From Blastocystis sp. Blastoise (taxonomy: Eukaryota; Protista; Bigyra: Opalinata), in the NCBI GenBank assembly GCA_039096225.1, contig JBBPEB010000027.1:186001-250000 (forward strand): 64,000 nt of DNA. The letters run 5' to 3'. The position numbers were made by a program, and so were the translations under genes. Shown here in pieces: positions 10,454-63,539 of this stretch (within the stretch, counting starts at the first letter, position 1; the number at the start of each line of letters is the position of its first letter). The notes below the pieces were generated by a model. The model saw only the letters and a list, made by a program, of their open reading frames with translations. It did not search any database and was not told the DNA's origin.

Positions 10454-13400
10454 TTAATCAATGTTTGAAATAGGTTTAAGAGGATGATTATTATTATTAT
10501 TATTATGAGTGATAATATTACTATTATAGGAAGTAGATGTAGAATTCGAAGAAGTAGTATTCCCAGTTGTAGCAGTAATATTCGACAAGGCATTTAGAGA
10601 AGCATTATTATTAGTATTATTAGAGATGTTATTAGAGATGTTATTATTATTATTATTATTATTATTATTATTATTATTATTATTATTATTATTATTATTA
10701 TTATTATTATTATTATTATTATTATTATTATTATTAGGATGAGGGCTACCTATAGGAGTGGGGGTATTCATATTATTCTCATTTTTTCCTAATTTAGCAA
10801 ATTTAACGAGATCAAGAGTATTACTAGTACTATCTTCATCAGTAAGGACTTGCTCTAGAAGGAAATAAGTAGATAATAAAAATATAATAAGTACAATAAT
10901 AATAAAATTAAAAAGTACATAATAGTATATACATATATAATAATAATAAACATAATAAATTATAATAGCTAAAATAATAATAATAATAATAATATATACC
11001 TGTTGTGCTATTACCCACTGAGGATTGGTCATCTGAAATACCCAGTTGCTTATTTAATTCCTTCTTCATCTTCTTAAACCAGGGGTGATGAAGCAACTCA
11101 TCTGCACTATATCGTGTATTCTGATTCTTATCTAATAATCCTTTTATAACATCTTGACACTATATAATAATAATAATAATAATAATAATAATAATAATAA
11201 TAATAATAATAATAATAATAATAATAATAATAATAATAATAATAATAATAATAATAATAATATATATATATATATATATATATATATACTTCTTTGGATA
11301 ATTTCTTGATAGCCAGATTATTATAATCGGGGTCTTCTTTAATAGTAGCTTGAATAACATCCGTTTGATCTTTTCCCTGGAATGGAAGCTTTCCACGAAG
11401 ACTAAAGAAGACAATACAAAATAGAGAGATAGTAATAATATTTATAATAATTATAATAAGTATAATAATAAACATAATAAACATATAATAAACATAATAA
11501 CAATATATCTATATATATACATAAGATAGAGAATAACTCCTAGACTCCACATATCGGCTTTGGCAGTATACCCCTTACGTGTAAGTACTTCAGGAGCAAC
11601 ATAATTAATAGTACCACAAGGATAAAACACTTCCTCTTTTGGCATAACCAACTTGGATAAACCAAAATCACCTATCTATAGAATATATAATAGGTATATA
11701 ATATATATATATATATACCTATCTTAACATCCCATAACTCTTCACCACAAAATATATTTTCGGGCTATATAATAATATATAATAATAAGTATAATACATA
11801 CAGAGATAATAATAATAATAATAATAATAATAATAATAATAATAATAAATATATATATACCTTAAGATCTCTATGTATAATGCCCATTCGATGTAAATAA
11901 CTAACACAATCAACAAGAGGCTCAAAGATACGATATGCTTCAATTTCAGTAAGAATAGGTCTACCACTAATTCTATCAAATAATTCACCTCCTTTAATTA
12001 ATTCCATCACAATATATATCTCCTATAATAATAAACATAATAATAATAAACATAATAATAATATATATATATATATATATATATATATACAGTAGCAGTC
12101 TCGAAGTTATCATATAATTGAACAATATTCTTATGATTAACCTATAAATATAAATATAAATACATATATATATATATATATATATATATATATATATACT
12201 AAAGATAATATGCCAATTTCAGTTTGAATTAAACTATTTTCACTTTCAGTCAGTTTTGTGCGATTAATGATTTTCACTGCGCACACTTGACCATTCTCTT
12301 TACTAATACATTTAAATACTTCTGCGAACTTCCCTTCTCCTATCTTCTCTTTCACCTCATACTCATCCTCTAAACGACGCACTTTAGTAACTTTGTTAAT
12401 CATATATATCCATTCTTCTCTATCTTTCTCACTTGTAGTAAAGAATTCTTCATTCAGAGTTACCCGCGGGAATTGAAGACTAAATCCATAATAACCACGA
12501 CTTTCCATTCCTGGATTATTTATTCTATATATATATATATATATATAGAATAAATATAAATATATAAATATACATAAATATACATAAATATATATATATA
12601 TATACTTCTCCACAGAGCAGTCTCCAAGGAAATAAACATCATTGGGCTCACTACTATAAAGATCGGTATAATAATACATAAAGTTCTCACGTATATATAT
12701 ATATCGTCTATTCAATTTATTAAAACGACTCAAAGAATATAAATCTCCTCCTTTACATTCAACATTCTCATTATCTTGAGGTCTATCGAGTTTATTCTTC
12801 ACACCATCACCAGCGTACTGTGTTCCGCACGCCGAACAATAACGTAAATTAATCTCACGACCACAATCTATATAATAATAATAATAATAATAATAATAAT
12901 AATAATAATAATAATAATAATAATAATAATAATAATAATAATAATAATAATATATATATATATATATATATACCTTGGCATCTAAGAAGTCTGATTTGTC
13001 TCTTTTCTTTCCCTCCATTTCCATCAGGGGTCAGAGGCGTCGTCTCCTCCACAGGCACTAATTCCCCGCGGCAATTCGTGCAGAATCGAACACGCTTCTT
13101 ACAGTAATTACACTCAATACACCAGTATGCCTTAGTATAATTCTCCCATCGATTATATAATAATATATTATATATATATATATATATATATATATATATA
13201 TATATATATATATATATATATATATATATATATATATATATATATATATATATATATATATAATACTTCTTATGTCTCTTCTTATTGGAATTTAAAGTAT
13301 CTAATGATGAATCAATCTCATTTAACTATATATATATATATATATATATATATATATATATATATATATATATATATATATATATATATATATATATTTA

Positions 13401-14680
13401 ATCTAGTACCACTACTATGGAAAGGAAGAGGAGCTCTGGTGGTATCTGCCCCGCGGGGAACTGTCTTATTATAATTATCATAACTACGTCCTTCATCATT
13501 ATTATCATAAGGCATAATAGTCTATATAGTATAATAATAATAATAATAATAATAATAATAATAATAATAATAATAATAATAATAATAATAATAATAATAA
13601 TAATAATAATAATAATATATATATATATATCTATATACACTGAAATAATCATAGAGAATAGGCATGGACTCCAAAAAGGTAATAAACTCATCATATGATA
13701 ACACACCCTATATAATAATAATAATAATATAGAATATAATAATAATATATAATAATATATATAATAAGAAAAGAATAACTAACATAACTCTTATATATAC
13801 CTTAGAACTTGAGTTTGAAAATGCTCGTTTTGATATAATACTAACTGCATTTGCCATATCATTACTACTCTATATATATTATAATATTATATAATATATA
13901 ATATATATAATATAATATATATATATATACAATTTCTTGAGAACTAATATTTTTACGAATCCAAACTATATAAAGAATATGAATAATATATATATATATA
14001 TATATACCTCCAGCTTGTTGATCTCCTTGTTCTTCGCATTCTTTGACCATAACAGTAACAACGCTTGGAGGGAGATGAGAAATTAAAAGACGGAATTCAA
14101 TCTCATGAATGACTTTATTACTAAAAGAAACATAATAATAAATATTAACAATATTAGATTTGAATATTTTAAAAATGTTCAAAGTATAGTATTCATACAT
14201 ACCCACTAGTATCAAATAAATTGAAAATAAATTCTTGACGTTCTTCAATGGAACCTCTACAATTCTTGACTAAACCTTTTTCAAATTCATCCCAACTAAT
14301 AAGGTTATCACGATTTGAATCAAATATATCAAAAGCACGTTCTAAAATAAATAAAAATAATAATAAAAGTATAAAAAAAAATGTTTGAATTAAAAACGAA
14401 AAAGAATAGAAATAAAAGCTAGTTACCTCCCAATACACCAGGAAGACGGAACACAGTTAAAAAGTCTTCTTTTGTTATAGTCAATTCATCACCATGTCTT
14501 TCAGCCAAACTCTATAAATGTATCAAAAATAGTTATTTTAGAATCAGCAATATATATACTTTAAAGAATCTCTTCATGACACGTAATTCAGCATCAGAAA
14601 CTAAGAATAAACGTAAATGATAACGAAAACGGACACTTACAAGGTTCTTGGACTTGTACAGCAGACTGGCATTGTCCCAT
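10454..14680 (-). CDS. CDPK7-like kinase: MGQC acylation motif, EF-hands, CxxC zinc-ribbon region, PH domain, CAMK-type kinase, poly-Asn tail
   Basis: ATG at 14680 (MGQCQS). EF-hand [17 protein letters not shown]. CxxC pairs CNYC, CTNC, CQDC, CSAC. PH-like [14 protein letters not shown]...DREEWI. Kinase motifs [35 protein letters not shown]. Two junctions are non-canonical (see findings). Confidence 0.85.
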
Positions 14681-61091: not shown

Positions 61092-63539
61092 TTATTCGGC
61101 ATCAAAGAAAGTAGATTGTTGAGCTCTCTCTGCAGCCTTCATACTTTGTTGTTTTAAAACATTAAGATATTGTTCTATTTGTGTCTTAAGAATCGTAACA
61201 GATCTCTTTTCGGTTGAACCTAATTTGAGTCTTTCATCATCTATATATATAGGTTTTATATAATTTATTATTATTATTATTATTATTATTATATATATAT
61301 ATATACGAGGATATTCATCAGAATAATAATATATATTATTCTTTCTAGCGTAGTCACTATTGATTTCAAATAGTTTTACTACATACATAGGTATACCAGA
61401 GTAAGACTTGGTAATAACAGAAGAGACTTCCATAAAAGGTGTAATACGAATAGTGAGAGTGGGATCTTCAAAATTAACGGCTTCAGAAGCATCATGATAT
61501 ACATCTTATATATATATATATATATATATATATATATATATATATATATATATATATATATACTAATTTCTTCATTACCAATCATAATAAATATATCATC
61601 CCATTTCTTTGAGAAGAAGGCTAATGTATTTGGATTACGAAGTAAAACAGTAGTACAGAAACTATATATATATATATATATATAATAGAATAAAAACTTA
61701 ATGAATATATATATATATATATAGAATATATATATAACAGTTATTATACATGAATCGTTCGGGTAATTGATCATGTCCTGAGATAGTAGAGAGAGTAGGA
61801 ATAGAAAGAGTCTCAGTACCCATCTCCTATATATATATATATACATAATAATAATAAGAAGAATAACATAAATAGAAAAATAAAGTATAATAATAAGAAG
61901 AGTAATAAAAATAATATATATATATAAATATATATCATACAATATTATTTATATATAGCAATAATAATATTATTTATCAAGAAAATAATATCAAGTGTTA
62001 TTATTATTATTATTATATATATATATATATATATATATATATATATATATATATACATCTACAGATATTTGAGCATTAGGAAGTTGTTCATCACGATTAC
62101 GACCAAGTAATTCATTTAATAAGACCATACTACCACTATATATATAATATATAATAATAAATATAATAAATATAATAATAAATATAATAAATATAATAAA
62201 TAAAATAATAAATATAATAAGTATAATAAATATAATAAATAAAATAATAAATATAATAAGTATAATAAATATAATAAATAAAATAATAAATATAATAAGT
62301 ATAATAAATATAACAACAATAACTATAATAATAATATACGTCTTAGCATTAATATCTAATGCCTTTTCAACAAGGTTTCTCTTTCTAAAGAGAAGTTTAA
62401 GAAGGGTATTTTGTTCTTCCTGATTAATAAGTTCACTGATATATAATATATCAATACGAGCAATACAAGTATCTTCATCAGGAACATAATTATCAAGTTT
62501 GGATTTAATGACAATGGCTTTTGCAGGGTCAATTCCCATGGGAATAAGACTACGTGTCTTTTCATCTATATATATATATATATATATATATATATATATA
62601 TATATATATATATATATATATTAGAATAAGTAGAATATACCCAGAGTATCCATCCAATTGATTTCCGTGGGAGCAGAAGGGACAGGATAAGAAAAATCAG
62701 CAGGGTTCAATAACTATAAGATTATATATATAATATAAATAATATAAATATAAATAATATAAATAAATATAAATAATATAAATAATATAAATAATATAAA
62801 TAATAAATAATATAAATAATAAATAATATAAATAAATAAAATAAATAATATAAATAAATAAATAAAATAAATAAAATAAATAAACATAAATAAAATATAA
62901 ATATATATACATCATCTACATTAGTAGTAGTAGGTTCAGGAGCAGGTGCAAATCCTAATTGTTCTGTTTGAGCATTTGCTTTGAAAATAGAACCAGATTG
63001 TTCTACAGCCTTAGGTTGAAGTTTTGTTTCAGGAGCAAAAAGATCAGAAATAGAATCCATCTAAATGGAAATTATATACAAATAATTATTTTATGTATTG
63101 ATTACATACGGGAGCAAGAGGAACTATATTAGATATATATATGTATATAATATATATAAATATAAAGAAATACTGTCAGTTGTACCAAGATTATTCAATA
63201 AGTTACCAGCTATATACATAATAACGATCATTTATAATAATAATTAATTTAGAAAAATGATATTTACTTTATTTTTAAATGAAAATATATAATATAATAA
63301 TATAATTTCAAATAAATACAATCGAGATTATTCTTCTTAGGAGATTCAGGCTCAATTTGATTAAAGAATGCAGAATCTTCTTTCTTGATTTCCTTGACTT
63401 CAGGTTGTTGTTTACTTCCTTGAAGTTGATCTAAAAAGGAGGCATTCGTTTGAGGAACAGGAGAGTTGTCCGAAAGTACTTCAGGAACCTCTTCATTAGG
63501 TTCTTCTTGACAAAAATCTATATCAGCAGGGCTAGACAT
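61092..63539 (-). CDS. Hypothetical protein: acidic/Pro-rich disordered N-terminus and globular C-terminus
   Basis: About 11 exons join in one frame with GT-AG junctions, including a 14-nt microexon at 63110-63123. No family recognised. Confidence 0.7.

Follow-up and report, generated by a model that had tools for sequence, protein, structure and literature searches.

A degenerate GC-rich palindrome spread through the exons and promoter-like gaps of Blastocystis sp. Blastoise is a predicted site of a dimeric DNA-binding protein

The DNA analysed here is a stretch of 64,000 nucleotides from Blastocystis sp. Blastoise (contig JBBPEB010000027.1, positions 186,001 to 250,000), which we call the window. 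It has a G+C content of 23.1% and sparse long open frames, and it contains eukaryotic genes for RPL3, a PH-domain kinase, a DNA pol phi/MYBBP1A-like protein, UNC-93, and eRF3. Scattered through these genes and the gaps between them is a GC-rich palindrome that often contains CCGCGG. An earlier, sequence-only reading of the window listed 14 CCGCGG sites and quoted 12 12-mers; every position and every quoted 12-mer is exact. Our local statistics are for 264 kb of the same contig (C2, with the window at C2:186001-250000), and genome-wide pattern counts were taken over the 33.34-Mb assembly of 34 contigs. Gene models are open-frame proxies, and in profile searches exons were searched singly rather than as joined spliced models.

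The palindrome is a real and strong DNA-level signal. An order-2 Markov model predicts 0.18 copies of CCGCGG in the window, versus 14 observed. We also shuffled synonymous codons within each open frame, which preserves the amino acids and the codon counts, including any rare codons that come from the motif. In the open frames of the window there are 13 copies, versus 1.49 +/- 1.17 after shuffling (maximum 5 in 500 shuffles), and over the 264 kb there are 30, versus 3.1 +/- 1.7. The sequence-only reading had named this codon-preserving shuffle as a test that might refute it, and a roughly ten-fold excess survives. We rejected clusters of rare codons as such, as the 264 kb contain 32 copies of CCGCGG in total while the counts of the other all-G/C hexamers that we tallied range from 0 to 2. 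Across the whole genome there are 2367 copies of CCGCGG, versus 197 of the reversed word GGCGCC. Longer patterns behave similarly: the 12-letter consensus from the earlier reading has 22 matches in the window (2 for the reversed pattern), a weight matrix has 28 (1 for the control), and a broad consensus has 53 over the 264 kb (6 for the reversed pattern).

The constraint rests on two five-letter arms that are 2 bp apart, with a purine-pyrimidine preference at the dyad. Genome-wide, TTCCCNNGGGAA occurs 558 times, versus once for its reversed control. With a GC centre (TTCCCGCGGGAA) there are 113 copies, and with a GT/AC centre (TTCCCGTGGGAA and its complement) there are 269; the reversed controls have 0 in both cases. 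In a sample of 50 of the 558 TTCCCNNGGGAA sites, from the first contigs of the listing, the centres were GC 8, GT/AC 26, AT 7, AA/TT 8, and CA/TG 1, and none of these 50 had a TA, CG, AG/CT, or GA/TC centre. Because only 113 of the 558 sites have the GC centre, CCGCGG is merely the most G+C-rich form of the site and not its defining part. The C beside the centre is essentially invariant: TTCCTGCGGGAA and its complement occur just 7 times genome-wide (0 for the reversed control).

Reading outward from the dyad, the 64 half-sites of the 32 CCGCGG copies have C, G, and G, then G (61%), T (30%), or A (8%), then A (53%) or T (33%), and then A (73%). These half-sites carry no information beyond the seventh letter from the dyad, or in flanks past 14 bp. 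The half-site can be written outward as Y-G-R-K-W-A, with CGGGAA, TGGGAA, and CGGTTA as common forms, and the full site as T-W-H-Y-C-R/Y-G-R-D-W-A, with the dyad between R and Y; at its best it is ATTCCCRYGGGAAT. If one arm is fixed, the opposite arm is mostly TTCCC, TAACC, TAATC, or TATTC, and the arm types GGGAA and GGTTA pair independently, with binomial-like counts (G-G 11, G-T 12, and T-T 3). So the earlier consensus, T-W-M-Y-C-R-Y-G-R-K-W-A, was essentially right, but its emphasis on the CCGCGG core was not. The degeneracies (R/Y at the dyad and G/T at the fourth position) are of the type that is read by proteins.

By extrapolating from arm frequencies (GGGAA is about a quarter of the arms), we estimate that there are roughly 9,000 palindrome sites in the 33-Mb genome. 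The motif's density is about 1 per 4-5 kb, or about one site per gene, and the density of CCGCGG in the window is about three times the genome average. On contig C1 the spacing of CCGCGG fits random placement, and on C2 the copies are clustered (coefficient of variation of the spacings 1.48, P = 0.001): there, 22 copies lie in 186-300 kb versus 2 in 300-444 kb. No periodicity of the spacing was seen on C1 or C2. The sites in the window, listed without strand, are:

12460-12473: TTACCCGCGGGAAT, phase 0 (F-P-R), in an exon of the PH-kinase gene, 22.9 bits
13063-13074: CCGCGG site with one weak arm, in an exon of the kinase gene
13448-13459: CCCCGCGGGG, in an exon of the kinase gene
17182-17195: ATTCCCGTGAATAT, outside long open frames
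17535-17548: TATTCACGGGAA, with T third from the centre in an arm
17970-17983: ATCCCCGCGGGAAC, phase 0, in the last exon of a kinase gene
18022-18035: TCTCCCGCGGGAAT, phase 1, in the same exon as the 17970 site and 52 bp from it
18350-18363: TAACCACGATTA, non-coding, between convergent genes
23536-23549: TAACCGCGGAAA, in a 329-bp gap between divergent genes, a promoter-like place
25989-26002: TAACCGCGGGAA, phase 1 (I-T-A-G-N), in an exon of a WD40 gene, within an 800-bp cluster of words
26208-26221: TTACCGCGGGAA, in an exon of the WD40 gene
30193-30206: ATTCCCGTGGGAAT, phase 2 (D-S-H-G-N), in the MYBBP1A / DNA pol phi-like gene
32742-32755: ATTCCCACGGGTAT, in an exon
37261-37274: ATTACCGCGGTTAT, in domain 3 of eRF3, encoding I-T-A-V-I
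40274-40287: TTAACCGCGGGGAA, in an exon
40388-40401: ATTCCCACGGGAAT, in the same exon as the 40274 site
40468-40481: ATAATCGCGGGAAT, in the same exon as the 40274 and 40388 sites
41457-41468: TTAACCACGGGT, a weaker site, in an exon of an ECD-like gene
41498-41511: TTTCCCGCGGGACC, in an exon of the ECD-like gene
41578-41591: ATCCCCACGGGAAT, in an exon of the ECD-like gene
42448-42461: ATAATCGTGGGAAA, in a short open frame
42726-42739: ATTCCCGTGGGGAT, in an exon
43032-43045: AAAACCGTGGGAAT, in an exon
43115-43128: TTAACCGCGGGAAT, phase 0, in an exon
43385-43398: TTATTCACGGGAAT, in a short gap between exons
49316-49327: GTCCCGCGGGAG, phase 2 (S-R-G), in an exon
53150-53163: GTAACCGCGGTTAT, in an exon, with both arms of the TAACC type
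55259-55272: ATAATCGCGATTAT, in an open frame of 873 codons
56043-56056: ATAACCACGGTTAT, in the same 873-codon open frame as the 55259 site
62532-62545: ATTCCCATGGGAAT, with both arms perfect and an AT centre

In the window, 26 of the 28 CCRYGG sites are inside long open frames, and, as the sequence-only reading had reported, all three phases are used (5, 10, and 13 sites in phases 0, 1, and 2). The excess is not explicable by one frame or by conserved amino-acid pairs. That reading also had the sites written into exons and promoters. They are indeed mostly exonic, and promoter-like divergent gaps contain them too, but they are not exclusively exonic: about a third are outside long open frames, including in intergenic gaps. 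Open-frame proxies carry 0.24 sites per kb, compared with 0.21 for divergent intergenic gaps, 0.19 for long gaps between same-strand genes, 0.10 for short gaps, and 0.07 for convergent gaps; by these small counts, divergent gaps are about as dense as exons and about three times as dense as convergent gaps. Sites are mildly over-dispersed among genes (P = 0.02). Asymmetric variants show no orientation bias relative to the coding strand (AC 10 versus GT 7; heterotypic arms 10 versus 5). The earlier view of a strand-symmetric, DNA-level signal that overrides codon choice is supported.

The sites also alter codons and proteins. In eRF3, the site ATT-ACC-GCG-GTT-ATT (I-T-A-V-I) aligns without gaps to I-T-A-L-I of the human protein, and a site in a Trm5-like exon (L-P-A-G-K) aligns without gaps to archaeal I-L-L-A-K. 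Because both alignments are gap-free, the sites are taken to arise by substitution and not by insertion of 12 bp, with some of the changes being synonymous and others replacing residues. The claim that the motif forces rare codons held up as well: CGG, among the rarest codons at 0.56 per 1000, has 23% of all its occurrences in the sample inside strong sites. The peptides that host the motif are inflated relative to residue-shuffled proteins ([PT]A[GV], 28 versus 10.8; [SNTY]RG, 22 versus 12.2; [SNTY]HG, 20 versus 9.1), and the surplus roughly equals the count of motif copies. A Pfam domain is absent from most of the exons that carry a site, and the majority of sites fall where the protein is poorly conserved. 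Frames with sites do not have a raised GC3 once the motif is set aside (0.144 versus 0.181), so we rejected general GC-biased conversion.

The palindrome is not the only word of this kind. In a screen of 7-mers in open frames, with the synonymous shuffle as the null, the palindrome family came first, and TGGCGGG/CCCGCCA, TTGGCGG, GCACGTG, and TGACGCA were raised as well. Over the 264 kb, the E2F word TGGCGGGA occurs 9 times (0 when reversed), and open frames hold 8 of the 9, with every phase and either orientation represented; it is typically found as TTTTGGCGGGAAAA or TTCCCGCCAAAA. GCACGTG (18 versus 1 reversed), which is also mostly exonic, and TGACGCA (21 versus 4) show the same exonic excess, again in every frame and either orientation. 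Like the palindrome, these E2F, G-box, and bZIP-like words have an even distribution along gene chains, and 13 palindromes have such a word within 200 bp, versus 5.5 expected (P = 0.004). Because several unrelated factor-type words share the exonic placement, a single repair or methylation activity is insufficient to account for it, while a tendency to keep protein-binding words in exons could.

Within the window, the E2F words TGGCGGGAA / TTCCCGCCAA, which are about 40-fold over chance, are at 6846, 25426, and 29925, and G-box-like (T/A)CACGTGC is at 25573, 25879, 31135, 38660, 53708, and 55454. The exons of the WD40 gene (25426-26221) hold an E2F word (25426), two G-boxes (25573 and 25879), and two palindromes (25989 and 26208) in 800 bp. 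This cluster adjoins a convergent neighbour, with no promoter nearby.

The sequence-only reading had raised the possibility that a DNA methyltransferase or a repair drive acts on the core, with the CACG/CGTG/CATG forms being the debris of CpG deamination. The core does contain two CpGs, and variants with a single transition are abundant. But a symmetric CpG decays equally fast on its two strands, to TpG when one strand is hit and to CpA when the other is. Of the two products of the CpG that occupies positions 5-6 in the 12-mer, TTCCCACGGGAA is in the class with 269 copies and TTCCTGCGGGAA is in the class with 7. Because the CpG input is equal and yet the copies differ about 40-fold, mutation alone cannot account for the difference: changes in the arms are removed while changes in the centre are tolerated. 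This rules out a plain halo of CpG deamination, and it suggests that purifying selection acts on a recognition site for a dimer. Other features of the variants also do not fit. The fourth position from the centre accepts the G/T transversion and hardly accepts the G/A transition; the CATG centre, which takes two changes, is found less often than centres with one, although AT pressure is strong; and AA/TT centres, which are not derivable from CGCG by deamination, are as common as AT among the 50 TTCCCNNGGGAA sites. CpG is barely depleted in the window (observed/expected of 0.84).

The genome's enzymes do not fit a methylation target either. The sole match to the C5-methyltransferases (PF00145) is DNMT2-like, with PPCQP and ENV motifs, and its best solved relatives are human DNMT2 (1G55, E = 3e-36) and tRNA (C38) methyltransferases. 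DNMT2 is a tRNA enzyme. This DNMT2/TRDMT1 homologue lies at C34:406469-406912 (L001:1501-1938) and is split by AT-rich introns. Vsr (PF03852) had no match in the genome, while control genomes did give matches, and the N4/N6 DNA methyltransferases (PF01555) had only a sub-threshold match of 22 bits; these searches were at the level of exons, so fragmented genes could escape them. We consider the methylation and decay explanation to be largely refuted, and we reject it as very unlikely.

A related idea is that the motif spreads without any benefit per site, if biased mismatch repair or gene conversion restores or creates it. Very-short-patch repair inflates CCWGG in E. coli, and a similar drive has been proposed for the cyanobacterial palindrome HIP1. 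A drive could account for the overriding of codon preference and the changed amino acids, for the location of most sites in poorly conserved protein segments, and for the regional density on contig C2, and a restoring drive would likewise deplete the TTCCTG variant. However, we found no homologue of Vsr, no C5-methyltransferase but DNMT2, and no N4/N6 enzyme above threshold, and a repair bias at one position cannot build a 12-letter context that by chance would almost never occur (558 copies versus 1 for the control). The GC3 of site-bearing frames argues against general GC-biased conversion, spacing on contig C1 is indistinguishable from random, and the excess of E2F, G-box, and bZIP-like words is not expected from a single repair enzyme, so we regard such a drive as distinctly unlikely. 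An element that acts in RNA, by pairing between copies of a self-complementary word in mRNAs or by recruiting an RNA-binding or splicing factor, is highly improbable. Most copies are exonic and transcribed, and copies in the same exon could pair (17974/18026; 41460/41502/41582). But CCGUGG retains G-U pairing and CCACGG does not, yet their counts on the coding strand are 7 and 10, and with this lack of strand preference we rejected RNA pairing; also, the third of the sites outside long open frames includes intergenic ones, and the E2F word, which is not palindromic, occurs in both orientations. Finally, the sites might be footprints of mobile elements or frame-preserving mini-insertions, made of back-to-back terminal repeats. 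A length of 12 bp is a multiple of three, and the palindrome resembles paired terminal inverted repeats, but in both of the cases that can be aligned to solved homologues the alignment is gap-free over conserved residues, and there is no information in the flanks past 14 bp. This origin is refuted for those two cases, and overall we find it hardly credible.

The E2F family deserves closer consideration, as the sequence-only reading had noted that the half-site TTCCCGC resembles an E2F site. Palindromes with the GC centre could be two overlapping and opposed E2F/DP sites (TTCCCGCG on either strand), read by the organism's own E2F/DP or atypical E2F proteins. The arm TTCCCGC does match the E2F consensus TTSSCGC, and canonical TTTGGCGGGAAA / TTCCCGCCAAA sites are about 40-fold enriched in exons. 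Candidate readers are also present: PF02319 has seven matches in the genome, which encodes typical E2F (loci L002 and L003), DP (L004 and L007, with the DP-type NIRRRVYDALNVL), and atypical E2F. The atypical members, L005 (C32:296068-298258) and L006, have two winged-helix domains and are E2F7/8/DEL-like. But the E2F core with its central CG is present only in the 20% of TTCCCNNGGGAA sites that are GC-centred, and a GT/AC centre leaves at best one imperfect site. The AT and AA/TT centres (about 30%) lack the invariant CG, yet these palindromes are hundreds of times above the control, and TTTSSCGC is not matched by arms of the types TAACC/GGTTA and TAATC, which are equally common. Going by the structure of E2F4-DP2, an E2F dyad flanked by a pair of GGGAA arms would read TTCCCGGGAA, which requires CCCGGG, and CCCGGG occurs 0 times in the 264 kb. 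The resemblance to E2F is partial, and E2F/DP could at most read the fifth of the sites with a GC centre; as an explanation for these palindromes we think it fairly unlikely.

We predict, with moderate confidence, that the palindrome is the recognition site of an abundant protein that binds DNA as a symmetric dimer, and that the sites are kept by selection. Of the alternatives in the sequence-only reading, the best fit is its first, in which an abundant dimeric protein binds the DNA at these sites. Our best reading is that it is a transcription-factor-type site and part of a regulatory code that overlies coding DNA; we infer both that a protein binds it and that the binding serves transcription or chromatin. 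Purifying selection would retain the sites in gene bodies as well as in promoter-like gaps, and the exonic sites would be written by substitution with the rarest codons, sometimes at the price of an altered amino acid. The palindrome would then be the commonest member of a wider habit of embedding E2F, G-box, and bZIP-like words in coding exons, with non-coding DNA, by contrast, being largely AT microsatellite. More speculatively, the decay of non-coding DNA to AT microsatellite may have moved much of the cis-regulatory code of this Blastocystis lineage into exons, as roughly 9,000 palindromes for one general dimeric factor along with E2F, G-box, and bZIP-type sites, under regulatory selection that would be strong enough to fix the rarest codons and reshape proteins throughout the proteome. 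We view this broader scenario as possible but tentative.

Several observations weigh against a binding site for a transcription factor. Along our crude gene chains the sites are spread evenly (5, 5, 7, 4, and 6 in successive quintiles), which would be unusual for a promoter factor; with these crude models there was no concentration near transcription starts, and we rejected a promoter placement at the 5' ends of genes. The statistics on position and on intergenic density are from small counts. No exon-level match was found for COE (PF16422), Zn2Cys6 (PF00172), or CG-1 (PF03859), the domain that goes with the CAMTA CGCG/CGTG box, and our controls cannot vouch for the sensitivity of searches for families that are found only in eukaryotes. 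And it is demanding of selection to uphold roughly 9,000 sites at a cost to the proteins.

We also considered a GC-rich contig of 30 kb that we take to be from a human-type Blastocystis. Its matches to the weight matrix are weak (10.4 bits, versus 7.6 for the control). Two of its top four matches are in the 2% of the contig that is outside open frames, and one of them is about 500 bp upstream of RPL3. Other samples of this contig's locus are 97-99% identical, which is too close for footprinting. All matches to RPL3 have an identity of 73% or less.

HIP1 (GCGATCGC) is a cyanobacterial palindrome that is over-represented relative to codon-preserving nulls, in all frames, and whose function is unsettled (PMC5861425, PMC4390886). 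The analogy to HIP1 that was drawn by the sequence-only reading holds for the genomic appearance: both are short palindromes that are in many-fold excess over a codon-preserving null, in coding DNA, and in all frames. It does not hold for membership. HIP1 is a fixed octamer at about 1 per 0.3-1 kb in bacteria, while the palindrome described here is degenerate, its arms constrained but its centre loose; its density is about 1 per 4-5 kb, and its host is an intron-bearing eukaryote. Also, HIP1's inner sequence is recognised by two orphan methyltransferases, while here we found only DNMT2, and HIP1 is quasi-periodic, while here we saw no period.

Among eukaryotic systems, the sites of dimeric factors can overlap coding sequence ("duons"), and factors bind within gene bodies in AT-rich Plasmodium. 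As in duons, a recognition word lies over codons, without regard to orientation or frame and alongside the words of other factors. The difference is that here there is about one site of a single 12-14-mer per gene, with the rarest codons and inflated host peptides. Letter for letter, the best match is to the EBF/COE consensus (ATTCCCNNGGGAAT), which also has a free spacer of 2 bp; exact 14-mers are at 30193, 40388, and 62532. However, the TAACC/TAATC arms are not EBF-like, and no COE domain was matched (in a search whose sensitivity was not confirmed by controls). To our knowledge, COE proteins are found only in animals. The E2F/DP consensus TTTSSCGC shares the arm TTCCCGC, the E2F/DP genes are present, and canonical sites are in the same exons, but a full E2F core is missing from most of the palindromes, their arms are spaced differently by 2 bp, and the other type of arm has no relation to E2F. 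The fungal PDRE (TCCGYGGA), which is bound by the Zn2Cys6 proteins Pdr1/Pdr3, has a similar everted CCG/CGG core with functional CCGTGG/CCACGG variants. It differs in the flanks, and here AT and AA/TT centres are tolerated and no Zn2Cys6 domain was matched (again with a sensitivity that was not confirmed by controls). The CSL word CGTGGGAA resembles part of the motif.

We note some other features of this genome. The only structured RNA gene that we found in the window is a tRNA-Trp (CCA) at 18835-18906 (minus strand). (TA)n microsatellites form many of the introns and appear as YIYIYI in open frames (13061-13291, 25183-25557, and 40738-41073); (TAA)n is also very abundant (TAATAA, n=1463). A search for homologues of a 769-aa frame in the window gave none. 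Elsewhere on contig C2 (the L033-L034 region), an uninterrupted open frame of 3350 codons at 120846-130895 has three CCRYGG sites, and one of 2623 codons at 258220-266088, with no Pfam match, has four.

The genome paper for Blastocystis reports no informative motif at the transcript ends of the tortoise isolates, and it mentions neither the palindrome nor methylation (PMC12129017). We did not find a published description of the palindrome: full-text matches to motif strings were only primers and unrelated sequences, and literature searches on CCGCGG in exons and on methylation in Blastocystis returned nothing relevant.

The palindrome is a strong and easily scanned marker for annotating DNA of this lineage. 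The analysis also corrects a methylation and CpG-decay explanation that was attractive but wrong, by using a simple internal control. If a protein does occupy the sites, then they would provide a handle on the control of transcription or chromatin in Blastocystis, for which no cis-regulatory element has been described. The genome would also offer an extreme example from nature of letters that serve regulation and coding at once, with the sharing measurable in codon usage and in the frequencies of peptides.

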